A stretch of 64,000 nucleotides of DNA from the NCBI GenBank assembly GCA_950097015.1, contig CATNEN010000025.1, positions 1,612,001 to 1,676,000 on the forward strand, written 5' to 3'. Origin of the DNA: Macrostomum hystrix (lineage: Eukaryota > Animalia > Platyhelminthes). The notes beneath the pieces were generated by a model, which saw only the letters and a program-made list of their open reading frames with translations, had not been told where the DNA came from and searched no databases. The position numbers were made by a program, and so were the translations under genes. Shown one piece after another: positions 146-53,430 of the stretch (position 1 is its first letter; every line of letters starts with the position of its first letter).

Positions 146-183
146 AAGAAGCCAATGAAACCAGTCGTTATACGATAACTCAC

Positions 184-3100
184 AGCTTGTGCAGGCGGCT
201 GGTGAGTTTAACAATCTCAGACTGAGTAGAGTGAGAGGCAGGCGAACTCTGCGAGTAGGCTGTGACTTGCCGGATGATCTGTTCCAAGACGTCAGGCATG
301 TGGATGCAGCCCAGCACTAGGGTGCAATAATCCACTACGGCTTTGTAATCAAGCCGAACTGCCACAGACAATGCCCATTGTACTTCGCCACCGTACTGAT
401 TATTGGGCCCGAATCTGGAATTGTCGCGACTGCTGCTGTTAAACAGCTGGGCATCGTTGCGGCTTGTTGGCGACTGGTAGAACGCCTTCATGGCTCTCAG
501 GGCGCAGTTGAAAGCGTTCTCCAGGTATTGGCGCGACTTTGTAGACGCCTGAGTAGCCTGCTGCTGCTGCTGTTGCTGCTGCCTAGCCGCATGCGCTGCT
601 AGCTGCTGTTGCTGCTGCTGCTGCTGCGGTTGCTGCTGGATAGCCAGTCGAGCGGCCATGTGATGATGATGATGATGCGCAGGCGGAGGTACAAATGTAC
701 CAATTAGGCCCTGCGGAATCTGAGCCGGATTCCACAGATTGGGATGAGGCCCGCCAACCTGCGACTGGGCTGCCGCGCCCGGCGGAGGCGTATTGGCAAA
801 AAAGTGCGCCTGCGGCGGAGGCCTGGCTGGCGAATAGAACGGAGCAGAGTGCGGCGGCGGCGGAGGCGGCATGTGGTGGCTGAAAGGCCCGGCCTGGTAG
901 AGGCTGGGATGATGAGGCGGATACATCGGACCTGGCGGCGGCATAGCGGCGTATTGGGCGGCAACCGACTGCGGCGTCACTGGCGGCGGTGGCTGCTGCT
1001 GAGGCGGAACCGGCGGCGGCTGCGACTGCCAGTAGGCGGCGGATGTCATCACTGAGGGATCGGCCGACTGCGGCTGCGGCGGCTGCGGAATTGCTGGCTG
1101 CGGCGGCATCCGAGCAGCCGCTGCTGAAGCTGAACGCTGCTGATGCAGAGTCTGCTGAGCAGTGCTCGCTGGCAGTGAAGATTCGTACAACTCGTACCAC
1201 TGCTTGGCCACCTATGTTTCGGATTCAATGGCAGAAGCTAGAAACGAAACCTAATCCAGGGGAACTAAATTAAGTGTCTTTTGAAGCTGGTTTATAATAT
1301 GGGATTCGAACTCCAGACTGAAACCGGTATAGTTAAATATAGAATTAATGATTAAAAAGGATGACAGCTAACCTGAAACAGAACCGTAGGGTGGACACCG
1401 CCGGCCATCTTCTTAGCCGATGCGTCGACAGCGTACAGGCCCTTCTCGAGCACCTCCAGGCTCTGATCTTTGCACTGGTCTAGGCAGCGGCGAATCTCTT
1501 GCGGATTGAGCGTGTGCGCCTCGTGCAGGCAGTCCAGGCACAGCTGGGCGGCCACAGCGCAGATGCCCTGGTCACGATTGCGGGCCACCTTGTCCGCTGG
1601 AATTCGGGTGAGAGTGGCCGACTTATATGAGAGCTGCCTGTAGTCGAGGAGAAGAACATGGAAGGGGGGAGAACATGGAAGGGGAGAAGAACTGGGAACT
1701 GGGAAGAACAGGAGCTGGGAAGACCAGAAGCTGGGAAGAACAGGGAACTGGAAAAAATAGGAGCTGGGAAGACCAGGGAGCTGGGAACAACAGGGAACTG
1801 GAAAAAATAGGAGCTGGGAAGACCAGGGAGCTGGGAACAACAGGAGCTGGGAACAACAGGAGCTGGGAAGAACAGGAGCTGGGAAGAACAGGAGCTGGGA
1901 AGAACAGGAGCTGGGAAGAACAGGAGCTGGGAAGAACAGGAGCTGGGAAGAACAGGAGCTGGGAAGAACAGGAGCTGGGAAGAACAGGAGCTGGGAAGAA
2001 CAGGAGCTGGGAAGAACAGGAGCTGGGAAGAACAGGAGCTGGGAAGAACAGGAGCTGGGAAGAACAGGAGCTGGGAAGAACAGGAGCTGGGAAGACCAGG
2101 GAGCTGAGAACAACAGGAGCTGGGAAGAACAGGAGCTGGGAAGAACAGGAGCTGGGAAGAACAGGAGCTAAGAAGAACACAGGAGCTGGGAAGAACAGGA
2201 GCTGGGAAGAACAGGAGCTGGGAAAAACAGGAGCTGGGAAGAACAGGAGCTAAGAAGAACACAGGAGCTGGGAAGAACAGGAGCTGGGAAGAACAGGAGC
2301 TGGGAAGAACAGGAGCTGGGAAAAATAGGGAACTGGGAAGAACAGGAGCTAAGAAGAACACAGGAGCTGGGAAGAACAGGAGCTGGGAAGAACAGGAGCT
2401 GGGAAAAACAGGAGCTGGGAACAACAGGAGCTGGGAACAACAGGAGCTGGGAAGAACAGGAGCTGGGAAGAACAGGAGCTGGGAAGAACAGGAGCTAAGA
2501 AGAACACAGGAGCTGGGAAGAACAGGAGCTGGGAAGAACAGGAGCTGGGAAGAACAGGAGCTGGGAAGAACAGGAGCTGGGAAGAACAGGAGCTGGGAAA
2601 AATAGGGAACTGGGAAGAACAGGAGCTGGGAAGAACAGGGAAGTGGGGAAGAACAGTGAAGTGGGGAAGAACAGGGTAACCGAAATGCGAGAAAAGGGGA
2701 AAATCTAACGAGTGGGGTGGAAATAAAGAATCGACAGTAGGAAAATGGGATGAACAGACTAATTGTAGCACGAGAAGAATACTTAAAAGTAAAATCGTAT
2801 AAACCAAAAATAGAAAGCAGAGAAGCAAATACTCACCAATAACGGCCACCTCAGGCGGGGTGAGGTGCTGGCGCCAAGTGACAAGCAGAATGGACAGGGC
2901 AGCAGTGCCAACCTCAGTAACCACATTCTGTATCCAGCTAACATGCGAAGAATAAGTTCTAATCTGCCAGGAGTTATTCACGCAATTGTACAGTCCCAGG
3001 GCGTACAGGCCAACCTGGAACGCGGCCAGCTGTAGGTAGCGATGCGGTCCATTATTGCCGCCAGTCGGGTCCTGTTGAAACACTGGAACAGACGCGGCGC

Positions 3101-12911: not shown

Positions 12912-15900
12912 TCAAGTGAAAGTGACGCGGCGGGGTCTCAACCGTGAACGTATAGAGTCCTCCGCATCGGTGGTGATGGGCGGCATTTCGCACTGTGGGC
13001 TCGGCAGCCGTGCTGGCTTCACGCGGTCGATGGTCACGTTCGTTGGCGTCCCCCGGATGTCGAGGGTGAATGTAATTGGTGACCTGTGCAGTACGCGAAA
13101 CGGACCCTGGTAAGGTGCTTCTAGCGGCTTCCGTACGCGGTCGAGACGGAGCCAGGCGTGGCTGCAGTCTTCCAGGTTGCCCGGAAGGTGTGTCGGCGTT
13201 TGTCGTGTGCGCGGCAAACGGTAGGGGTAGAAAAGGTTGTGGAAGCGATCGGATAGTTGGTGCAGGCTTGAATCGTCTGTTACTACTGGAGGCACGATTG
13301 GTTGCTCGCCGGTCACTCCGGAAAACGGGCAGTGTCCAGCGTCGTCCGGCTGAATCCGCAGTCCGAGTAGCACAATTGGCAGTTGTTCAAGCCAACAGCG
13401 TCCTCGAGCCCGAAGGGCAGCCTTCAGCGAGCGGTGTGCTCGCTCGACCAGGCCGTTGGATCGGGGGTTGTACGCTGAGGTTCTGATGTGATGGATGCCG
13501 AACAGCTTGGTAAGTTCTGCCATGAGCTCGGCGCGGAACTGGGCACCCTGGTCCGTGATGAGCGTCAGAGGTGGACCGAAGCGAGACACCCAGGCGCTGA
13601 GGAATCCACGGGCGACGGACGCGGCGGAGATGTCGATCAGCGGGACGGCCTCCAACCAACGCGTGTAGGCGTCGATGATTGTAAGTAGGTAGCGTGATAG
13701 TTGTCGACCATCAGCTTCCGGGGGCGTTAATGGCCCGACGATATCCATGTGTACCGTTGTGAATCGCTGAGAGGGTGTTGGTAGCTGATCTAGTGGTCGG
13801 CGCACATGCTGAGTGACTTTGTTGGCTTGGCACTGCTGGCATTCTTCTGCCCAACGGCGCACGTCGCGCGACATCTCGGACCAAAAGTAGCGGTGGCTGA
13901 TCAATCGGCAGCTAGCCTTGACACCAGGATGGGCTAATGAATGAATCGATGTAAAGATGTGCTTTCGCAACTCCGGTGGCACGACTGGCCGCGGATTGGG
14001 GTAGGATGTCTCACAGAGTAGTTGGCAGTCAGTCAGTCCGATGTCAAAGAGCTTGAAAGCGTCGGACTCCGGTGTCGGCGTTGAATCCAACTGTTGTGCG
14101 CGTGCAATTGCCGGTAGGTCAATGCTGGGTAACGCATGCGTGGTTTCGTCTGTCGGGACTATCTCCTGTGCGGCGGCGACCAGCGCCTCGGATGTTGAGC
14201 TGTTTTCGCGGTCTTTTGAGGGCCGTGACAGTGCGTCGGCGACGACGTTGGTTTTTGCCGGCAATGTGAACAATGTCCGTGACGATCTCGGAGATTGCCG
14301 ACATTTGGCGCTGCTGTCTGTCGGAGAAGCGTTCCTTGTTGCTTGCGAAGGCGCCGATAATTGGCTTGTGGTCGCAGAACACCGTCACCGTCTGGCCTTA
14401 AAGCAGGTGTTTCCAAGCTTTGATGGCGGCGAAGATAGCGAGTAGCTCCCGATCGAAGGTGCTGTACGCAGCTTCGGTGTCGGAGAGCTTCCTTGAGAGA
14501 AAGGCGAGAGGCGTAGAGTCACCGTCTACTACTTGGTGCAGGCAGGCTCCGAGGGCCATAAAGCTGGCGTCTGTCGTTACTGTGAAGTTGGCTCGCGGGT
14601 GAGGAAAGGCGAGTGTGACGGAGTCGGCGAGTGCGTCTTGCAGCGAACGCCATGCCAGGTCATGCTCTGGGAGCCAATCGAAGGTGTTGTGCAGAAGTCG
14701 TCGCAGCGGGAGCAGTAGTTGCGCGTAGTGCGGAATGTGGCGCTGATAAAAGCCGAACATGCCGAGGTAGCGCTGTAGCTCCTTGCTGTCCTTGGGCGTC
14801 GGGAGGGCTCGCAGGGCGCTCACTCGCTCAGGCAGTGGTCGGATCCCGTCTCCGGAAATCTGATGACCTAAGAACTCAATGGTGTCCTGGTAGAATTGAC
14901 ATTTGTGAGGGCTCACTCGCAGGCCGGTATCGCTCAGGCGTTGAAGTACGGCATGCAGATGTGCGTCGTGGTCCTCACGGCCGGCGCTGTGGATCAGAAT
15001 GTCATCGATGTAGGTGACGACGAATGGCATGTCGCGGAAAATGGAGTCGACAAATCGTTGAAAAGTGCTAGCTGCGTTGCGCAGGCCGAACGGCATGCGT
15101 AGATACTCAAACGAGCCGAATGGCGTGCAGACTGTAGTTTTCTCGATGTCCTCCTCGGCAATGGGCACGAAGTGGTAGGCCTTGACCAGGTCAAGCTTGC
15201 TGAACACTCGTGCGTTGTGGAGTCGATGATGAAAATGACCGATGTGTGGTATCGGGTAGCGATCTGGCTTGGTCACTGCATTGAGTGCGCGGTAGTCTCC
15301 GCAGGGGCGCCACGAGCCGTCCTTCTTCTTCACCATGTGGAGAGGGGACGCCCATGGGCTGGCGGCGGGTCGCACGATGCCGAGACGGAGAAGCTGGTCG
15401 AACTCCGCCTTTGCTGCGTCGAACTTGGCTGGAGGGAGTGGGCGGGGGCGGCAGAAAAGCGGCTTGCTGTCGGTGATGATCTGGTGACTGACTGTGCTTG
15501 ACGAAGGAGCAGACGAATAGTCTGGGGCTTCTGCTAGTTGTGGGAAAGCGTCGAGAGGTGTTGCTAGCACTGACGATGTAGCTAGTACGCGCGGTGCTAC
15601 TTCCGCTGCTGCATGGAGAGAGGCATTGAGCTCCGTAGTCGGGTCATGCACCCGCTTGTTGCGCATGTCGATCAGGAGACCGAACTTAGCTAGGAAGTCG
15701 GCTCCCAAAATCGGCGGTGTGTTAGTGACAATGAAGTTCGCAGAAAAGAGGCGGCGTAGATCCGGGACAGCGAGGGATAGCGAGCACTGGCCAAGAGTGT
15801 GGAATTCGCGACCATCAACGCTGCGTAGGCGGACTTGCGTGGGAGCCAGCAGGTGTCGAGGAGCGAGGTCCAACGGTAGTAGGGAGCGCTCGGCGCCGGT

Positions 15901-16092
15901 GTCCACAACGAAACGAACAGTTTTTCCGAACAACTTGCAGGGTAGTAACAGCGAAGAGGCCTCGTTGAGGTCATGGCTCGGCCCTGGCGCATGACCTACA
16001 TGTTTGTTGGGCTGACGGCGCGCGACTGGGCCGGCGTAGCCTGGCGGCTGTTGAGCACACGCTGCGGCTTGGATTCGGGCCACTGGCACCAT
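12912..16092 (-). pseudogene. pol: Retrotransposon pol (aspartic protease, RT, RNase H, integrase), interrupted by one stop codon and one frameshift in this sequence
   Basis: Protease VVDTGAERS; [12 protein letters not shown] and YIDD; RNase H TDAS..DRELLAI; integrase HSLAH..CQQC, D-D-E (HMDIVG, ITDQG, VERAH) and GPF motif. In-frame TAA at 14398-14400 where LL-E-GQ is expected; one extra base in the T-run 14252-14256 shifts HIAGK/TNVVADALSR. Confidence 0.92.
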
Positions 16093-16820
16093 GGTCGGCA
16101 GGTGCGAGCGTCTGCGCCGTAGTAGATGTGGGCGTTGCAGACCTTCTGTCTCTGTTGTCGAGGGCGTCGCTGCGGTCGAGCCTCTCGAGCACTTCCTTGG
16201 GGAGAGGCGGTGGGTGTCGCTGTGGCTCGCGCGATGGTGTGGAAAGGTGTCAGGGGACCGGCGACTGCCAGCATGCTGTCGGCGATCTTGGCAAAATTGT
16301 CGAGCGCTTCAGACTCATGGCCGACGAGCGCTGAACGGATGTTGCCGGGTAGGGCGGAAAGCAGGCGAGATTTTACGATCGAGTCGTCTACCTGTAGTCC
16401 AACCTCTGTGAAGCGACGCCGGATGTCCGTAACCAGCTGCGTGGGGCGGCGATCACCGAGCTCGACAGCTGCGAGCGCTTCTTCGATGCGCTGGTGGCGG
16501 TTGGCGCGAAGCATTTCCGTCACGGCCGCCTTCAGCGCTTCGTAGTTGTCTTCAACGTCCACCATGTCACAGGCGACATCTTCTGGCAGCGCGGCCAGGG
16601 CGTGGTGGAACTTTGTCGTCGAGCAGGTAACGCGTGCTAAGATGAATTGGGATTCCAGCTGGCGGAACCATACGTCTGGCGCTTTTCGGTAGAAGGGAGC
16701 CGGGCGGACCGTGCCACGGTTGCCGGGCTCTTGGACAGTAGGTGTAGTGCTGGCTACGTCGGCGGAAGCAGAAGGGCCGTGGTTAGCCTCGTTTCGTCGT
16801 TGGTTTCGTTTGTTGGGCAT
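15996..16820 (-). CDS. gag: Retrotransposon Gag (274 aa)
   Basis: ATG 25 nt after the PBS; [17 protein letters not shown]-terminal motif typical of this gypsy-type Gag; C-terminal [18 protein letters not shown] Cys/His motif; overlaps pol. Confidence 0.88.
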
Positions 16821-17120: not shown

Positions 17121-18091
17121 ATCTATTATACTGCAAATCTGAACAACTTCTGAATATGGTCGCATGCATGCAAGATTAATTCTTCAGGCTGCATAATTTA
17201 ACTTTAGGTTAAATTTAGAATCAAGAGATTAAGGCGGCAAGAGCTCTAGTTCAGTTTTTATTCGAGATCTACCGAAGTAATTGTTGACACCATTGAGAGA
17301 AATCAGAAATCGACCAAATGGACCCACTAGGAAAGAGGATTGAAATGAGTTTCAATCAGAGTTTGATATACGAATCCATAACCCTGGAATTACTGATGCG
17401 AATTAAAAACACAAATTTTTATGTATAGCATGCATGGCCATGGGAACAATGTGAGAACTCGGTTTGCCTTGTCAAAAGCAGCTAGATAATTAAGGGCATC
17501 TCATGGCAGTTTCCTCATTGTTATCGAATGGAAAATGCGAGATAAGCTAGAGTTATGTTTTATTAGATAAGATTTTTCAGTGTTTTCGTCCTTTAGATCA
17601 TGAACATATTCTAATGCATGATTATAAGCATCCTATTCTGTTAGTTTATATATTGTATACTTATTGTAACTTTAATGTAATGTGCTATTTGAGATATATT
17701 TTTATGTTGTAATGCAAACCATAAACAAAATATAAAATATAACGATTCGACGCCGTGCATTTTTTCTTTTTTGTAAAGTCTTTCAATATTAATAACTAGC
17801 GTGCAGCTCGCACGTCCTTGCCAGCATGCATGTTGGACTTAACTGGCTAATTTCTAGAATGCACAGCACAGTGTAAATAAAGTTACAATATCAAACACGA
17901 CATGGAAAGGGAGGTGACCAGATATAATTTATCATTGAGTATAAAATAACCACTCTGCAACACAAGCACAAGGACCATTAACAGTTATTACTTCAGTAGT
18001 CCTTGCAAGCTATAACTGAAATTAAGCAAAGCTACCTGCACTCAAAACGTGTTTCTAATACAAGCGTACGTTGTCCATAAAGGCGGAAATA

Positions 18092-20116
18092 ATGTTTATG
18101 CAAGTTTGCATTGTTATTCTGGCGTTGCTACCAACAATGGCTCATTGCCTGCCCAATCCGGTGAGTAATTTCCTGACTTTTTTCTTCTGAAAAACTTTGG
18201 ACATAATAAGATCGATCGAGCTTATCATTCATAATAGTAGTAATTATTAAAATTATACTAGCTAATAATTAAATGAGTATTTTTAATATACATGCCCAAA
18301 TTCGGCCAGATGTGCAGCCGACAGTAGCTATTGCGTGGCGCATCTAAAAGGCTGCGTATAGCTGTTCAGTCCATGGACTGGGGGACGCCGCACCCACCCT
18401 CAATTACCCCAGCTGATGCTTGTACCCATTTAACACCTGGGGTCTACAACAACTGAGGCTACAACTTTCCTAATTGGCCAATATTCAGGTGAGAGGCGAC
18501 CAACTGGGCGACTGCATTCTGCGTGACACCAACTGCCCTGCCAACGGCTCCATGGACTACACCCGGTTCGTACCGCTGGTCCTAGTGCTACAGGAGCTGA
18601 AGACTCCGGACAGGTGCAGCTGCGATCTGAACACGGAGACCTGTCTAAGAGCGTGCCTGTACCCCTACCTGCTGAAAGCATACGCCTTGAGTGCTGTTGC
18701 CCTATCGGGCAAGACTAAGAAGGAGGCCGTTCGCGTGAGTAATTATTGTCAATAATTACCCTGTTAGAGCGTAAACTTTGTAGGAAACTTCAACAGAGCC
18801 TTAATACTGATACTCCTAATACTGTGGGCACTGGCACATCATTTGGTGATAGTGTGGACCCGCAGCTAGCGAGGAGCCAATTTTTTCCATTTCCCTGACT
18901 CCTGAGCACATACGCACACAGGAGTGTACATCTGTCCTGACTTTCTTATCGTCAGGCAGTGTGCACTCTCACTGTGCCATTGATGTTGGCCCCGCAAGGG
19001 CTTTGCACAAGAAGCCCCCAAACCTCTGCTACTGCGCCCCAAAGAAATACTGTCTCGCCGCGAAATCGAGCTCAGAGACCTTAGTGCGAGAGTCAAACGC
19101 TCTGCCACTCACCCTAAATTTGTTATTACGAGTAAAACGTTTTACTGGCATGACAAGTACTTAGATCGTATACGATTGATTATATTGTTACATGTATAAA
19201 CATAAGCTGCCTTGAGATTATCAAGATTATCGCAAAGCTGCTGCTGTGAGATTATTGCTGACTCCTGAGATTTATATGCTAAATGAGATTATGGCTAAGC
19301 ACCTGTTATGCTATGAGATTGTTATGAGATTAAGAAAGGTGCTTCGAGCGTATTAGATTATTGTAATAACACAACTGCAAATTTGCTATGTGATTACGTC
19401 AAAAGCTGCATTCAGACCGTCGAATTGCATGAGCTGAGATCATTTTATATTGAGAATGTTTTCCAGCTTTTGGGAAATCGACAGATTAGGGGGGAGTCTG
19501 TTTGAAGGATCAATTTGCCAATTTTGCGATCTAGGGGACATCAAGGACCTCTAAATGTAAGATGCTTCTTATGCAAGTCCTTGTGGATAGTTCACCAGGT
19601 TTGGAGGAATCGTCGAATTTTAGGGGGTATTGTTAAGTAGTTTGCCAACAATGGAGGCATAAAATAAACAATTTTTCTAACTGAGGCATAACTTGGTTGT
19701 TGGTTATTACGCGGCCGATTAATACACAGCGATCTTAAGAAATATCTAAGAATTAGATAGAATCGTTTGTGGTTCCCGAAGGGGCAACATTTACTAGTCC
19801 ACTATACAAAAAATTATATGTTGCGATCTTCTATCTATCTTGGGAAGGTTCTAAAGGTACATGCCCTTATCTTTCTGTACAGAATGTGATTCGTGAGACC
19901 ATAGCGACAGCAGAACCGCAATTAAAGCCGTGTCTAGTGGAGAATCGCAACTGCGAAAGCCTTGGCATTCCTACTGACAAGAAGTCCATGTCAGAGGCTG
20001 TGACTAGCTTCATCAAGTTATACGAATTGGAACCCGAGTGTCTGTGCGATCTGGACGTTGAAGCCTGCGCCAGGCGCTGTGTGTACTCTGTCATGAAGAA
20101 GAACTATCAGCTTTGA
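18092..20116 (+). CDS. Unrecognised small secreted protein (182 aa) with two 6-cysteine repeats
   Basis: Three phase-0 exons: 18092-18160 (MFMQVCIVILALLPTMAHCLPNP, signal-peptide-like, donor GTGAGT), 18489-18734 (donor GTGAGT), 19883-20116 (acceptor CTTTCTGTACAG, stop TGA). Exons 2 and 3 share C-x6-C-x26/28-C-x-C-D-L-x2-E-x-C-x-R-x-C-x-Y-x4-K-x-Y-x-L. Confidence 0.8.
18305..18472 (-). mobile_element. SINE family 2 (CORE-like) headless fragment in intron 1 of the secreted-protein gene
   Basis: Homologous to 38580-38727; minus strand reads GCCTCAGT..ACCCCAGGTGTTAAATGGGTAC. Confidence 0.65.
18817..19114 (-). mobile_element. SINE family 1 copy in intron 2 of the secreted-protein gene
   Basis: Reverse complement is colinear with the 53431 copy, more diverged. 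Confidence 0.8.
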
Positions 20117-20561: not shown

Positions 20562-20786
20562 CATCTCCATCGTCGGTGGTCACCTACCTTTATTTAGTAG
20601 GTGACCACCGACGTCACCTAGGCACATTTATTGCTAGGCTAGTCTAGACCTTCAAGGGCTACAACAGGTGGAACTGGGCCACTATGGACACCCTGACGCG
20701 AATTTCTCTGATTTCACAGATCAAGCCTAAATATTAGGCGCAGCTCAACCACAGGACACCATAGCCTAGTCTGTCAACCAATCAGT
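20562..20786. repeat. Dispersed repeat family 3, copy 2, with a perfect 17-bp inverted repeat
   Basis: Matches 3577-3765; arms at 20571-20587 and 20597-20613. Confidence 0.8.
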
Positions 20787-40928: not shown

Positions 40929-41884
40929 AAGGACATATAAGAAAATGTTACTTTCTGAATACTTGAATCTCGAATCAGAATTATTTGATGGTCTCGTTGA
41001 CTCATCCGCATGTACTCAAAATGCATTATTTCTATAGTTTTATTCAGGAAATGTATTAATACTGACGCAACATATTTTACAATCGTATTTCTTTCTTTCA
41101 ACCAAAAATGTCGCTAATTGAAGCATTTATTTATAGTCCTCACGAAACTAAAATGTCACGATGTCAACATCAATAATATTTTTGTATGAAGATAATAAGG
41201 TGAGAACTAAATTTTGCAACTTAAATTTGCAAAAAACACAAATTTCCTTGCGCATAGAAACTGTCAATCATGATTTTTGATGCAACAATTGTGAACGAAT
41301 GAAAACATCGAATACACGAATCTGACAATAACCTCACCTTGTGCTTATAGCCCTTAGCGAGGCAGACCTTAACACCCCCTGTGGCTCTGCTTGGATGTAT
41401 ATGTTGGAACTGATAAAAATAATTGTACCATTGTTGCAATTAGGGCCTTGATTGTATATTATTCATTTGGTGTTAACTGAAGCTAAGCTAGAAAAAAATT
41501 GCCCCAATCACTAGCTAAGATCAGTCGGTTAAATGATGGATAATCATCATGGACTGATGGGGAAACCTTGATTATATAGGGGCTATGACGACCCGGAGAT
41601 TCGACATTATTGAGAAAGTGGGTATTGCAGGGTTTTGAAAATGCGCGCGGAAGCGTGTGACAGGAGGCCTTGAGTTCTGCTCAAGCTTATATCTAGAAAC
41701 TAACTCAGTCTTGAATGTCAACTTTTTATAATAGTCTGGGTCGAATACTTTGCAGTGCGTGTAAAAAATGTGACTATGATTTACAGAACTAAATATTTTC
41801 GCCACGAAGGTTAAAGACATCCCTATGAGCTTCAATAAAAATGTAATCTGAATTTACCTATGAATCCAAGAGTCCAAGAAATGC

Positions 41885-44100
41885 TTGGGATTACTCTGGG
41901 ATTTGCTTGGGATTACTCTCGGATTTGCTTCCCATCACTATGGGATTTGCTTTCCATCACTATGGGATTTGCTTGGGATTACTCTTGGATTTGCTTCCCA
42001 TCACTATGGGATTTGCTTGGGATTACTCTTGGATTTGCTTCCCATCACTATGGGATTTGCTTTCCATCACTATGGGATTTGCTTTCCATCACTCTGGGAT
42101 TTGCTTTCCATCACTATGGGATTTGCTTTCCATCACTATGGGATTTGCTTTCCATCACTATGGGATTTGCTTCCTATCACTATGGGATTATTTGCTTTCC
42201 ATCACTATGGGATTTGCTTGGGATTACTCTTGGATTTGCTTCCCATCACTATGGGATTTGCTTTCCATCACTATGGGATTTGCTTTCCATCACTCTGGGA
42301 ATTGCTTTCCATCACTATGGGATTTGCTTTCCATCACTATGGGATTTGCTTTCCATCACTATGGGATTTGCTTCCTATCACTATGGGATTATTTGCTTTC
42401 CATCACTATGGGATTATTTGCTTTCCATCACTCTGGGATTTGCTTTCCATCACTATGGGATTATTTGCTTTCCATCACTATGGGATTTGCTTTCCATCAC
42501 TCTGGGATTTGCTTTCCATCACTATGGGATTATTTGCTTTCCATCACTATGGGATTTGCTTCCTATCACTATGGGATTTGCTTTCCATCACTATGGGATT
42601 TGCTTTCCATCACTATGGGATTTGCTTTCCATCACTCTGGGATTTGCTTCCTATCACTATGGGATTATTTGCTTTCCATCACTATGGGATTATTTGCTTT
42701 CCATCACTATGGGATTTGCTTTCCATCACTATGGGATTTGCTTTCCATCACTATGGGATTTGCTTTCCATCACTCTGGAATTTGCTTCCTATCACTATGG
42801 GATTTGCTTTCCATCACTATGGGATTTGCTTTCCATCACTCTGGGATTTGCTTTCCATCACTATGGGATTTGCTTTCCATCACTATGGGATTATTTGCTT
42901 TCCATCACTATGGGATTTGCTTCCTATCACTATGGGATTTGCTTTCCATCACTATGGGATTTGCTTTCCATCACTATTGGATTTGCTTTCCATCACTCTG
43001 GGATTTGCTTCCTATCACTATGGGATTATTTGCTTTCCATCACTATGGGATTTGCTTTCCATCACTATGGGATTTGTTTTCCATCACTATGGGATTTGCT
43101 TTCCATCACTATGGGATTTGCTTTCCATCACTCTGGGATTTGCTTCCTATCACTATGGGATTATTTGCTTTCCATCACTATGGGATTTGCTTTCCATCAC
43201 TATGGGATTTGCTTTCCATCACTATGGGATTATTTGCTTTCCATCACTCTGGGATTTGCTTTCCATCACTATGGGATTATTTGCTTTCCATCACTCTGGG
43301 ATTTGCTTTCCATCACTATGGGATTATTTGCTTTCCATCACTCTGGGATTTGCTTTCCATCACTATGGGATTATTTGCTTTCCATCACTATGGGATTTGC
43401 TTTCCATCACTCTGGGATTTGCTTCCTATCACTATGGGATTATTTGCTTTCCATCACTATGGGATTTGCTTTCCATCACTATGGGATTATTTGCTTTCCA
43501 TCACTATGGGATTTGCTTTCCATCACTATGGGATTATTTGCTTTCCATCACTATGGGATTTGCTTTCCATCACTATGGGATTATTTGCTTTCCATCACTC
43601 TGGGATTTGCTTTCCATCACTATGGGATTATTTGCTTTCCATCACTATGGGATTTGCTTTCCATCACTATGGGATTATTTGCTTTCCATCACTCTGGGAT
43701 TTGCTTTCCATCACTATGGGATTATTTGCTTTCCATCACTCTGGGATTTGCTTTCCATCACTATGGGATTATTTGCTTTCCATCACTATGGGATTTGCTT
43801 TCCATCACTCTGGGATTTGCTTTCCATCACTATGGGATTTGCTTTCCATTACTCTGGGATTTGCTTCCTATCACTATGGGATTATTTGCTTTCCATCACT
43901 CTGGGATTTGCTTTCCATCACTCTGGGATTTGCTTCCCATCACTATGGGATTTGCTTTCCATCACTCTGGGATTTGCTTTCCATCACTCTGGGATTTGCT
44001 TTCCATCACTCTGGGATTTTCTTATGGATCTCTCTGAGATTTTCTTGTGGATCACTCTGAGATTTTCTTGTGGATCACTCTGGGATTTCTCGGAGATCAC
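41885..44100. repeat. 22/25-bp minisatellite (GGGATT[ATT]TGCTTTCCATCACTAT)n
   Basis: 2.2-kb array; source of three overlapping ORFs of more than 700 aa. Confidence 0.95.
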
Positions 44101-46735: not shown

Positions 46736-47699
46736 AGGCAGGGAAGAGTGGAGACTGAGGAGAATCGCATTTGTCATCACAATGTATCATGAAACTAGTC
46801 ATGTCAGAGAGTCATGTAGAAGCAATTAAAATTGTGTTGAAATGCAAAACAGCAGCAACATGTGATGCAACATTTCTGCATGTCAATGCTTTTGAAATCG
46901 CGGCCTATGATGCATAAAATTACTGAAAATGAGCCAAATTTGCATGCAGCACAAGCTGCATAATTTTGTATATCTTCATGGAACAAAGACTTCTCAGAAG
47001 CTATGACTACCGCTTCAGTTTGTAAACTCAAAAGGTCTTTGTCAGGAGTCGCGGGACAAAGCCAAGCATTTATTTTTAGCGTACATCTACCATCTGCACA
47101 TTCGTATCTGTACGCTGAAGACAGGGAAGCCTTGGTGAGGGCTCATAGCAACAAAAACTCCAGCCAGTCATATCTTTCCATCCAGTTTATGCATTTGGCC
47201 GGATAAACACACAAAGCATATGTATATCCTTTACTGAACCGGACGGAAGTAAGGGCACTGCATGAAAAATATTAGAGGAAGTAAAAAATAGCGGAAGTGT
47301 AAACTGTAAACTGTTCGAGCTAATTATTCGATTATAACTCATAATAAGACTTTCTGACTGATAATGTAAATCTAGCTCTTCAAATATAAATTCTCGATTC
47401 CTTAAGGACCTCCTTGTAAGCTGAATGTTTGAGTGGCGAATCGCACTGCAGTCCAAGAAACTTATCCTTATCGAATAAGCGAATCGAATCGAATTGAGTT
47501 GAAGATTGAAATAATAACATTGGAATCTAAATGCAAGGTGCCCTGGCACAGGAAATCTCAGGCGATAATTGATTAAAAGGCAGGAGAAATTATTGGCGCA
47601 CCGATCATCGTTGACAGTATCTTATTGTGCGATCTGAAGGCATCATTATATATGTTGGTTAATTGTGAGCTGCGTGAACTGATACAGACAGAGTAGCCA

Positions 47700-50600
47700 T
47701 TGGAGCGGTAGAGTAGAGTATGGGGAGAGGAGCGAGTAGACATTGGAGCGGTAGAATAGAGATTGTGCGGAGAGGAGAGGGTCAACATCGTAGCGGTAGA
47801 GTAGAGTGTGGGGAGAGGAGAGAGTAGACATTGGAGCGTAGAAGAGAGAGTGTGGGGAGAGGAGAGAGTAGACATTGGAGCCGTAGGATAGAGAGTGTGG
47901 GGAGAGGAGAGAGTAGACATTGGAGCGGTAGAATAGAGATTGTGCGGAGAGGAGAGGGTCAACATCGTAGCGGTAGAGTAGAGTGTGGGGAGAGGAGAGA
48001 GTAGACATTGGAGCGTAGAAGAGAGAGTGTGGGGAGAGGAGAGAGTAGACATTGGAGCCGTAGGATAGAGAGTGTGGGGAGAGGAGAGAGTAGACATTGG
48101 AGCCATAGGATAGAGAGTGTGGGGAGAGGAGAGAGTAGACATTGGAGCCGTAGGATAGAGAGTGTGGGAGAGGAGAGAGTAGACATTGGAGCCGTAGAAT
48201 AGAGAGTGTGGGGAGAGGAGAGAGTAGACATTGGAGCGGTAGAATAGAGAGTGTGGGGAGAGGAGAGAGTAGACATTGGAGCCGTAGAATACAGAGTGTG
48301 GGGAGAGGAGAGAGTAGACATTGGAGCGGTAGAATAGAGAGTGTGGGGAGAGGAGACAGTAGACATTGAAGCCGTAGAATAGAGAGTGTGGGGAGAGGAG
48401 AGAGTAGACATTGGAGCGGTAGAATAGAGAGTGTGGGGAGAGGAGAGAGTAGACATTGGAGCGGTAGAATAGAGAGTGTGGGGAGAGGAGAGAGTAGACA
48501 TTGAAGCCGTATAATAGAGAGTGTGGGGAGAGGAGAGAGTAGACATTGGAGCCGTAGAATAGAGAGTGTGGGGAGAGGAGAGAGTAGACATTAGAGCGGT
48601 AGAATAGAGAGTGTGGGGAGAGGAGAGAGTAGACATTGAAGCCGTATAATAGAGAGTGTGGGGAGAGGAGAGAGTAGACATTGGAGCCGTAGAATAGAGA
48701 GTGTGGGGAGAGGAGAGAGTAGACATCGGAGCCGTAGAATAGAGAGTGTGGGGAGAGGAGAGAGTAGACATTGGAGCGGTAGAATAGAGAGTGTGGGGAG
48801 AGGAGAGAGTAGACATTGGAGCCGTAGGATAGAGAGTGTGGGGAGAGGAGAGAGTAGACATTGGAGCCGTAGAATAGAGAGTGTGGGGAGAGGAGAGAGT
48901 AGACATTGGAGCGGTAGAATAGAGAGTGTGGGGAGAGGAGAGAGTAGACATTGGAGCGGTAGAATAGAGAGTGTGGGGAGAGGAGAGAGTAGACATTGGA
49001 GCCGTAGAATAGAGGTGTGGGGAGAGCAGAGAGTAGACATTGGAGCCGTAGAATAGAGGTGTGGGGAGAGCAGAGAGTAGACATTGGAGCCGTAGGATAG
49101 AGAGTGTGGGGAGAGGAGAGAGTAGACATTGGAGCCGTAGGATAGAGAGTGTGGGGAGAGGAGAGAGTAGACATTGGAGCCGTAGAATAGAGAGTGTGGG
49201 GAGAGGAGAGAGTAGACATTGGAGCCGTAGAATAGAGAGTGTGGGGAGAGGAGAGAGTAGACATTGGAGCCGTAGAATAGAGAGTGTGGGGAGAGGAGAG
49301 AGTAGACATTGGAGCGGTAGAATAGAGAGTGTGGGGAGAGGAGAGAGTAGACATTGGAGCCGTAGAATAGAGAGTGTGGGGAGAGGAGAGAGTAGACATT
49401 GGAGCCGTAGAATAGAGAGTGTGGGGAGAGGAGAGAGTAGACATCGGAGCCGTAGAATAGAGAGTGTGGGGAGAGGAGAGAGTAGACATTGGAGCCGTAG
49501 AATAGAGAGTGTGGGGAGAGGAGAGAGTAGACATTGGAGCGGTAGAATAGAGAGTGTGGGGAGAGGAGAGAGTAGACATTGGAGCCGTAGAATAGAGAGT
49601 GTGGGGAGAGGAGAGAGTAGACATTGGAGCGGTAGAATAGAGAGTGTGGGGAGAGGAGAGAGTAGACATTGGAGCCGTAGAATAGAGAGTGTGGGGAGAG
49701 GAGAGAGTAGACATCGGAGCCGTAGAATAGAGAGTGTGGGGAGAGGAGAGAGTAGACATTGGAGCCGTAGAATAGAGAGTGTGGGGAGAGGAGAGAGTAG
49801 ACATTGGAGCCGTAGGATAGAGAGTGTGGGGAGAGGAGAGAGTAGACATTGGAGCCGTAGAATAGAGAGTGTGGGGAGAGGAGAGAGTAGACATTGGAGC
49901 CGGTAGAATAGAGAGTGTGGGGAGAGGAGAGAGTAGACATTGGAGCGGTAGAATAGAGAGTGTGGGGAGAGGAGAGAGTAGACATTGGAGCCGTAGAATA
50001 GAGAGTGTGGGGAGAGGCAGAGAGTAGACATTGGAGCCGTAGAATAGAGGTGTGGGGAGAGCAGAGAGTAGACATTGGAGCCGTAGGATAGAGAGTGTGG
50101 GGAGAGGAGAGAGTAGACATTGGAGCCGTAGGATAGAGAGTGTGGGGAGAGGAGAGAGTAGACATTGGAGCCGTAGAATAGAGAGTGTGGGGAGAGGAGA
50201 GAGTAGACATTGGAGCCGTAGAATAGAGAGTGTGGGGAGAGGAGAGAGTAGACATTGGAGCCGTAGAATAGAGAGTGTGGGGAGAGGAGAGAGTAGACAT
50301 TGGAGCCGGTAGAATAGAGAGTGTGGGGAGAGGAGAGAGTAGACATTGGAGCCGTAGAATAGAGAGTGTGGGGAGAGGAGAGAGTAGACATTGGAGCCGT
50401 AGAATAGAGAGTGTGGGGAGAGGAGAGAGTAGACATTGGAGCCGTAGAATAGAGAGTGTGGGGAGAGGAGAGAGTAGACATTGGAGCCGTAGAATAGAGA
50501 GTGTGGGGAGAGGAGAGAGTAGACATTGGAGCCGTAGAATAGAGAGTGTGGGGAGAGGAGAGAGTAGACATTGGAGCCGTAGAATAGAGAGTGTGGGGAG

Positions 50601-52875
50601 AGGAGAGAGTAGACATTGGAGCCGTAGAATAGAGAGTGTGGGGAGAGGAGAGAGTAGACATTGGAGCCGTAGAATAGAGAGTGTGGGGAGAGGAGAGAGT
50701 AGACATTGGAGCCGTAGAATAGAGAGTGTGGGGAGAGGAGAGAGTAGACATTGGAGCGGTAGAATAGAGAGTGTGGGGAGAGGAGAGAGTAGACATTGGA
50801 GCGGTAGAATAGAGAGTGTGGGGAGAGGAGAGAGTAGACATTGGAGCGGTAGAATAGAGAGTGTGGGGAGAGGAGAGAGTAGACATTGGAGCCGTAGAAT
50901 AGAGGTGTGGGGAGAGGAGAGAGTAAACATTGGAGCGGTGGAATAGAGAGTGTGGGGAGAGGAGAGAGTAGACATTGAAGCCGTAGAATAGAGAGTGTGG
51001 GGAGAGGAGAGAGTAGACATTGGAGCGTAGAATAGAGAGTGTGGGGAGAGGAGAGAGTAGACATTGAAGCCGTATAATAGAGAGTGTGGGGAGAGGAGAG
51101 AGTAGACATTGGAGCCGTAGAATAGAGAGTGTGGGGAGAGGAGAGAGTAGACATCGGAGCCGTAGAATAGAGAGTGTGGGGAGAGGAGAGAGTAGACATT
51201 GGAGCCGTAGAATAGAGAGTGTGGGGAGAGGAGAGAGTAGACATTGGAGCGGTAGAATAGAGAGTGTGGGGAGAGGAGAGAGTAGACATTGAAGCCGTAT
51301 AATAGAGAGTGTGGGGAGAGGAGAGAGTAGACATTGGAGCCGTAGGATAGAGAGTGTGGGGAGAGGAGAGAGTAGACATTGGAGCGGTAGAATAGAGAGT
51401 GTGGGGAGAGGAGAGAGTAGACATTGGAGCGGTAGAATAGAGAGTGTGGGGAGAGGAGAGAGTAGACATTGGAGCGGTAGAATAGAGAGTGTGGGGAGAG
51501 GAGAGAGTAGACATTGGAAGCCGTATAATAGAGAGTGTGGGGAGAGGAGAGAGTAGACATTGGAGCCGTAGAATAGAGAGTGTGGGGAGAGGAGAGAGTA
51601 GACATCGGAGCCGTAGAATAGAGAGTGTGGGGAGAGGAGAGAGTAGACATTGGAGCGGTAGAATAGAGAGTGTGGGGAGAGGAGAGAGTAGACATTGGAG
51701 CCGTAGAATAGAGGTGTGGGGAGAGCAGAGAGTAGACATTGGAGCCGTAGAATAGAGGTGTGGGGAGAGCAGAGAGTAGACATTGGAGCCGTAGGATAGA
51801 GAGTGTGGGGAGAGGAGAGAGTAGACATTGGAGCCGTAGAATAGAGGTGTGGGGAGAGCAGAGAGTAGACATTGGAGCCGTAGAATAGAGGTGTGGGGAG
51901 AGCAGAGAGTAGACATTGGAGCCGTAGGATAGAGAGTGTGGGGAGAGGAGAGAGTAGACATTGGAGCCGTAGGATAGAGAGTGTGGGGAGAGGAGAGAGT
52001 AGACATTGGAGCCGTAGAATAGAGAGTGTGGGGAGAGGAGAGAGTAGACATTGGAGCCGTAGAATAGAGAGTGTGGGGAGAGGAGAGAGTAGACATTGGA
52101 GCCGTAGAATAGAGAGTGTGGGGAGAGGAGAGAGTAGACATTGGAGCGGTAGAATAGAGAGTGTGGGGAGAGGAGAGAGTAGACATTGGAGCCGTAGAAT
52201 AGAGAGTGTGGGGAGAGGAGAGAGTAGACATTGGAGCCGTAGAATAGAGAGTGTGGGGAGAGGAGAGAGTAGACATCGGAGCCGTAGAATAGAGAGTGTG
52301 GGGAGAGGAGAGAGTAGACATTGGAGCCGTAGAATAGAGAGTGTGGGGAGAGGAGAGAGTAGACATTGGAGCCGTAGGATAGAGAGTGTGGGGAGAGGAG
52401 AGAGTAGACATTGGAGCCGTAGAATAGAGAGTGTGGGGAGAGGAGAGAGTAGACATTGGAGCGGTAGAATAGAGAGTGTGGGGAGAGGAGAGAGTAGACA
52501 TTGGAGCGGTAGAATAGAGAGTGTGGGGAGAGGAGAGAGTAGACATTGGAGCCGTAGAATAGAGGTGTGGGGAGAGGAGAGAGTAGACATTGGAGCGGTG
52601 GAATAGAGAGTGTGGGGAGAGGAGAGAGTAGACATTGAAGCCGTATAATAGAGAGTGTGGGGAGAGGAGAGAGTAGACATTGGAGCCGTAGGATAGAGAG
52701 TGTGGGGAGAGGAGAGAGTAGACATTGGAGCCGTAGAATAGAGAGTGTGGGGAGAGGAGAGAGTAGACATTGAAGCCGTAGAATAGAGAGTGTGGGGAGA
52801 GGAGAGAGTAGACATCGGAGCCGTAGGATAGAGAGTGTGGGGAGAGGAGAGAGTAGACATGGGAGCGGTAGAGTA
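47700..52875. repeat. 45-bp satellite (GAGAGTGTGGGGAGAGGAGAGAGTAGACATTGGAGCCGTAGAATA)n
   Basis: 5.2-kb array of roughly 115 units; source of the 1093-1785 aa ORFs. Confidence 0.97.
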
Positions 52876-53430
52876 GAGTGTTGAATGAGTAGACTAGTAC
52901 TAATGAATACCTGCTTATAGCTAAGCCCACCCGTCGTCTCGCAAATTAGTAATAAGTTTTATTTATTTAAATAATTTCGACCTCTGTAGAGAGCACGGTG
53001 TCTATATAGAATAGGCTAGAATAGAAACCTTATTGCCAGTACTGAACAGCTGTTAATCGCCCAGGGGTATTCCAATAACCTACTGAGCAACCGAGACCGG
53101 CATTAACGTTCCAATAGCTTGTGCCATTATTGCCTAATAAGACGGCGCTTTCAGATATCGCCTTCGGGTAGCATAACGGTAAATTAAAATTGAAAACAGA
53201 GAATCCTTAGGGCTTGAAAATAGCAATCTATTATTTATATTTATTAGCACCAATTGCACAATGGGATAAAGGACAATGGTTGTATTGGCTAGTATTGCAT
53301 CACCAGCGCATTTTTTGAGGTGCAAAAACTTATTTTTTCTATTTTCTAAACAAAAATAGCTGCACAATCTTAATCCTGTGAGAATTTTTAAAATCACACT
53401 TTCTAAAGTTTTAATCTATAATGCAACAGT

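Follow-up and report, generated by a model that had tools for sequence, protein, structure and literature searches.

The window, a stretch of 64,000 nucleotides of the Macrostomum hystrix genome, very probably holds a real gene at contig C25:1630092-1632116, and the sequence-only reading that had pieced it together from unconnected open reading frames proves essentially right. The gene probably encodes a secreted protein of 182 amino acids, in which a cleavable signal peptide is combined with two anciently duplicated modules of about 65 residues belonging to a multigene family so far found only in Macrostomum. The domain family is undescribed, with neither a Pfam model nor a structural relative. 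The gene is not a wholly unknown sequence, since GenBank and UniProt contain relatives from Macrostomum lignano. An RNA-based annotation of the M. hystrix genome has moreover been published, so that the earlier description of the gene as hidden is unproven.

The predicted product is the sum of three coding exons (23 + 82 + 77 codons; Table 1), and the translation and splice sites agree with the earlier proposal of a 182-aa protein whose exons are joined across GT-AG, phase 0 introns. The GTGAGT donors lie at 18161 and 18735 and the AG acceptors at 18487-8 and 19881-2, both introns ending in a pyrimidine-rich CAG, and all exon junctions are in phase 0. An in-frame TAA at 18056 is found 5' of the exon 1 ATG, and in the exon 1 peptide A-H-C precedes the likely point of signal cleavage. 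The assignment of a signal peptide to this exon is borne out by equivalent mini-exons in the paralogues and in an M. lignano gene. The Cys codons of module 1 span 18513-18656 in exon 2 and those of module 2 span 19931-20080 in exon 3, and there is no competing long open reading frame at the locus on either strand. Splicing at the window locus itself is predicted by homology, and the gene model is backed by paralogues that share its plan, by the processed retrocopy of one of them and by an M. lignano gene model derived from transcripts.

Table 1. The six-cysteine gene and other features of the 64,000-nucleotide window (window positions).
Feature	Position	Strand	Remarks
ORF with ZSWIM4-8 C-terminal domain	180-1211	-	Pfam
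LTR retrotransposon	12912-16820	-	just upstream of the gene; integrase (Integrase_H2C2, rve), reverse transcriptase/RNase H/aspartyl protease, DUF7041 gag-like
Candidate TATA box TATAAAA	17940-17946	+	~150 nt 5' of ATG; weak, sequence only
Exon 1, coding part	18092-18160	+	23 codons, ATG, hydrophobic core, signal peptide
Intron 1	18161-18488	+	328 nt, GTGAGT...CAG, phase 0
Exon 2	18489-18734	+	82 codons; module 1, then linker with GKTKK
Intron 2	18735-19882	+	1148 nt, GTGAGT...CAG, phase 0
Exon 3, coding part	19883-20116	+	77 codons + TGA; module 2
ORF with HTH_psq domain	41860-44037	+	Pfam
Very long open frame (up to 1785 aa)	47573-52930	-	GC skew 0.75; no Pfam match

Exons 2 and 3 each encode one copy of a six-cysteine module, with the spacing C-x6-C-x26-C-x-C-x6-C-x3-C in the former and C-x6-C-x28-C-x-C-x6-C-x3-C in the latter. 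When the two exon products are compared directly by BLASTP they are 33% identical with an E value of 7e-9, which is far beyond chance and establishes real homology, and a profile built from 17 modules scores the window modules at E 1.2e-21 and 2.8e-20. These matches, together with the paralogues of the same plan, uphold the claim that the gene contains two homologous exon-encoded modules. Mean column identity in the alignment of the 17 modules (A1) is only 35%. Invariant in all 17 are the six Cys and one Arg, which is located between Cys5 and Cys6 (C-x-R-x-C), and both window modules retain all seven of these positions. The family is defined by this alignment, and its members are recognised by the pattern C-x5-7-C ... 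C-x1-3-C-x4-7-C-x3-C with an Arg between Cys5 and Cys6, which is present in both window modules, and by a short signal exon with one module per phase-0 exon, which is the architecture of the window gene.

AlphaFold2, when run on the module alignment, predicts that the module is formed of three helices (residues 3-12, 24-36 and 50-68). The mean pLDDT of the single-module model is 75.9, representing moderate confidence from shallow alignments, and a two-module M. lignano protein taken as a proxy yields an all-helical model with a pLDDT of 78.3, again of moderate confidence and from a shallow alignment. Module 2 of one M. lignano relative, PAA82461.1, is without both Cys4 and Cys5, and because the two are lost together this suggests that they pair as a disulfide. 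The window protein contains an N-G-S sequon and has no membrane anchor. Its charge is near neutral (about +2 for exon 2 and about -2 for exon 3), making a cationic antimicrobial peptide unlikely. An R-G-D tripeptide at 18492-18500, near the predicted mature N-terminus, is probably a chance occurrence, since it is not conserved in the paralogues or in the M. lignano relatives.

Search queries were single exons or natural relatives. Six-frame searches with each window exon against its own genome (220,453,370 bases in 42 contigs) recovered about 25 related modules, and the 17-module profile finds 31 at E<=0.01, so that there are at least 31 modules at about 16 loci, the ten contigs involved being C1, C2, C5, C7, C8, C25, C31, C34, C35 and C38. 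Amino-acid identity among the paralogues ranges from 33 to 55%, a divergence at which synonymous sites would be saturated, and window exon 3 is 55% identical to module 2 of a C38 paralogue. Signal-peptide mini-exons with phase-0 GTRAG donors were found 5' of seven paralogues, and the mini-exons of the paralogues and of the M. lignano gene encode 14-22 aa.

Paralogues with other numbers of modules, named earlier as something to look for, exist within the M. hystrix genome, where they carry one, two or at least five modules with one per phase-0 exon. Single-module genes are found on C7, on C8 and as a pair at C38:3119xxxx, and the two-module genes are the window gene and those on C35, C38, C31 and C5. 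Tandem arrays of nearly identical units are located at C34:3420514-3422150 (at least 5 units) and C35:1340416-1341322 (at least 3 units). The unit of the C34 array measures 356 bp and is formed of a 91-codon phase-0 exon and an 83-nt GTGAGT...AG intron, with each exon encoding one module and a KR site. The two arrays may represent polyprotein precursor genes of the same family. In both species the single-module proteins end in tails such as KR-x2-G-K-K, G-K-R-x2-G-R-R or runs of Arg. The suggestion that symmetric phase-0 exons had been duplicated is borne out by the exon-module units of the arrays and by the paralogues of the same plan.

Evidence for splicing within the family is provided by a processed retrocopy on C2, which aligns with L002, the three-exon paralogue on C35, over three blocks of 87%, 97.6% and 96.6% identity, and from which both introns are absent, exactly at the GT/AG boundaries. 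Such exact intron loss points to an mRNA intermediate and hence to a parent C35 mRNA that was spliced as predicted. A TGA within the signal peptide marks the retrocopy as a pseudogene. It is contained in C2:2615837-2619037 (L003), at reverse-complement coordinates of about 1352-2060, and no poly(A) tail is visible. An inverted repeat of about 15 bases (TGACGGCGTCTGTTA ... TAACAGACGCCGTCA) flanks the copy, and some of this repeat is parent 5' UTR sequence. The two-module ORF that occurs naturally in the retrocopy gave no match in a word-index search of proteins.

Outside M. hystrix, an exhaustive profile search of 1.84 billion representative proteins returned only 11 matches at E<=0.001. Eight of the 11 are from M. 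lignano, of which two are two-module proteins, five are single-module proteins of 108-128 aa and one is a 792-aa model that fuses the module to a tubulin-tyrosine-ligase gene and whose cluster also contains a 137-aa single-module protein. A further match, P0005, is a mis-framed ENA tandem array with repeated CRCD module fragments and is probably derived from a Macrostomum genome. The remaining two were rejected as spurious: P0010 is a Sel1/dynamin protein, and in the giant protein P0011 the match extends over no more than the N-terminal third of the profile. At this search sensitivity, and given the flatworm data in the library, the family has so far been seen only in Macrostomum. GenBank labels the M. 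lignano relatives that it holds "hypothetical protein", and the relatives are partly filed under misleading automatic saposin or WAP names.

The two-module M. lignano proteins, PAA82461.1 (BOX15_Mlig029205g3, 193 aa) and A0A1I8G7C1 (174 aa), score E 2.6e-29 and 2.8e-27 respectively with the profile and share with the window gene a signal peptide and the order of the two six-Cys modules. Window exons 2 and 3 are collinear with modules 1 and 2 of A0A1I8G7C1, to which they are 41% and 33% identical. Both proteins differ from the window gene in being only 33-41% identical to its modules and are thus probably not one-to-one orthologues of it. In the PAA82461.1 gene (L041:3001-3740) an exon of 22 codons encodes the signal peptide, and modules 1 and 2 follow, each on an exon of its own. 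Its introns are in phase 0 and equal in position to those of the window gene, and in both genes exon 3 opens with an Asn codon. The M. lignano GenBank models were built from RNA-seq transcript assemblies (PMC5730564).

In a maximum-likelihood tree of 28 modules from M. hystrix and M. lignano, the module-2 copies of both species cluster together (support 89/81) and the module-1 copies cluster separately from them (89/80), with the modules of the C5 gene as the exception. Separate module-1 and module-2 clades that run across species indicate that the internal duplication predates both the split between M. hystrix and M. lignano and the later gene duplications. An origin by exon duplication, as had been proposed, is supported with the qualification that the duplication is old, the module clades including M. 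lignano. The nearest relatives of the window gene in the tree are the C38 and C1 paralogues. The single-module orthologue pairs, with branches of 0.07-0.22, are much better conserved than the two-module genes, for which the branches are 0.25-1.16.

The module has been compared with known families and folds at several levels. Pfam searches at E<=10 with the window exons, the 17 modules and eight M. lignano proteins gave only isolated noise (Tsg_N 0.045, GP88 0.067, DUF7545 0.17 and RhoGAP 0.049). A profile search of all PDB sequences gave no match, and no usable match was obtained from the ESM Atlas, either by features or by shape. The earlier view that the module belongs to no recognised family thus withstands Pfam, PDB, Atlas and fold searches as well as a direct test against saposins, which was negative. 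The statement that it is not an insect OBP, Kazal, Kunitz, ShK or defensin domain is likewise sustained, as no Pfam match at E<=10 rises beyond noise. The IL-17 and CHH/ITP Pfam models also give no match at E<=10, and the predicted all-helical fold differs from those of Kazal, Kunitz, defensin and IL-17. WAP, the label that UniRef assigns automatically to single-module relatives in M. lignano, was rejected because the modules have six Cys and not eight; P0004 and P0015 have no Pfam match at E<=10.

With regard to function, a single module would be the working unit of the family, as suggested by the KR in each array linker and the basic tails of the single-module relatives. The module would act extracellularly as a stable helical binding or ligand domain, locked by three predicted disulfides, and would have more in common with secreted signals or carriers than with enzymes. 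In the one-module and many-module relatives it would probably be released by dibasic cleavage. KR and G-K-K-type tails are typical of processing by convertases and carboxypeptidases in the regulated secretory pathway. The window protein has no clear dibasic processing site beyond a KTKK in its linker and a KK close to its C-terminus, and hence it may act as an uncut two-module protein. If the module does act extracellularly, a hormone- or pheromone-like signalling ligand is the most favoured single role, though less probable than not, a gland or matrix secretory product is somewhat unlikely, and a carrier of hydrophobic ligands is less likely again, to the same degree as the other roles taken together. 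The proposal in full is that the family has an undescribed disulfide-locked three-helix fold used for flatworm-specific secreted signalling ligands, in which dibasic cuts free the modules and exon duplication sets dose and diversity; taken whole, this is speculative and must be rated unlikely.

Secreted helical peptides of 40-75 aa with three disulfides are known from Euplotes pheromones, Aplysia attractin and crustacean CHH/ITP. By analogy, CHH-type precursors end in G-K-K-type tails that resemble those of some single-module relatives here. In the nematode polyprotein allergens or antigens (ABA-1), tandem helical units are found within one precursor with basic cleavage sites between them. The C34 and C35 array paralogues can be likened to such precursors in that their tandem units appear to be split by basic sites, although the ABA-1 units exceed the modules in size and lack a six-Cys framework, and the window gene has two modules with no clear cleavage site. 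No relation in sequence or fold between the module and the nematode polyprotein allergens was detected.

The main alternative to a signalling ligand is a gland product, reproductive or otherwise (seminal-fluid, shell, cement or adhesive), which would not be a signal and would evolve fast under sexual selection. This rather doubtful reading draws on the taxon restriction and expansion of the family, on the long branches of its two-module members and on the report that Macrostomum reproduction-related genes are fast-evolving and escape homology detection (PMC10468722). However, the single-module orthologue pairs are well conserved (0.07-0.22), which is atypical for rapidly evolving seminal proteins, and the 12 gene ids of the family in M. 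lignano are all missing from the accessible part of the supplementary text of the same paper, including its complete table of in situ-tested tail-region transcripts. None was found either in the accessible parts of the supplements of PMC5816591, PMC10468722 and PMC7336406 considered together, which is weak evidence of absence, or in the main texts of the papers searched. It is more improbable still that the locus holds no working gene but an unexpressed relic or ORFs brought together by chance. Against this, no stop codon interrupts any of the three exons, their splice sites are strong and their phases agree, and all seven invariant residues are kept in both modules, in contrast to the true retro-pseudogene of the family with its stop codon in the signal peptide; what favours it are the repeat insertions in both introns, the fact that no canonical polyadenylation signal (AATAAA) was found 3' of the stop codon and the lack of a close M. 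lignano orthologue among the relatives found (best 41% identity).

A divergent saposin-like, lipid-interacting protein is highly improbable. The idea arises from the UniRef entry A0A1I8GAE8, which is named 'Saposin B-type domain-containing protein', and from a module that is helical with six Cys and hydrophobic helices. Saposin-like proteins (SAPLIP) resemble the module in being small, secreted and helical with six Cys, and in being often repeated within a precursor, but they differ in Cys spacing and in having four or five helices instead of the three predicted here. Nor does the module spacing agree with that of the saposin domains encoded in this genome. No match to SapB_1 (PF05184) or SapB_2 (PF03489) was found at E<=10 among 25 family sequences, and a six-frame search with SapB_1 found 12 true domains, on C39 and C33 only, with none at the family loci. 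Moreover, hhalign gave a probability of 0.13% for A1 against a saposin-domain profile (A3), and no saposin structure is among the fold matches listed.

Lineage-restricted secreted Cys-rich proteins are common, and the gene alone is therefore unsurprising. The family is nonetheless a clean case of a domain without a Pfam entry, a solved relative or a fold match, and its one-exon-one-module structure is unusually clear, the number of copies varying between 1 and at least 5 within a single genome. Defining the family would clear about a dozen "hypothetical proteins" from the M. lignano annotation. Macrostomum serves as a model in studies of regeneration, bioadhesion and sexual conflict, and transgenesis and RNAi exist for it, so that the family is directly testable there.

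Both introns of the window gene contain dispersed repeats, which explain their greater length compared with the paralogue introns. The repeat in intron 1 (~160 bp, at about 18287-18441) has more than 2,500 first-look candidate places in the genome, and 39 others that were scored are 83-88% identical. That in intron 2 (~280 bp, at about 18822-19100) likewise has more than 2,500 such places, with 76-82% identity for the full-length copies that were scored. The intron repeats are SINE- or MITE-like. Elsewhere in the window, the very long open frame on the reverse strand may represent low-complexity repeat sequence or encode a secreted protein of repetitive sequence, and the ZSWIM4-8 and HTH_psq ORFs are neighbouring genes or transposase remnants unrelated to the six-Cys gene. 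A near-perfect palindrome, formed by an inverted repeat around GGTGGTCACCTAC, is located at 20563-20612, about 450 nt 3' of the stop codon, where a scan for bacterial-type terminators also detected it, and may be the end of a MITE or a hairpin.
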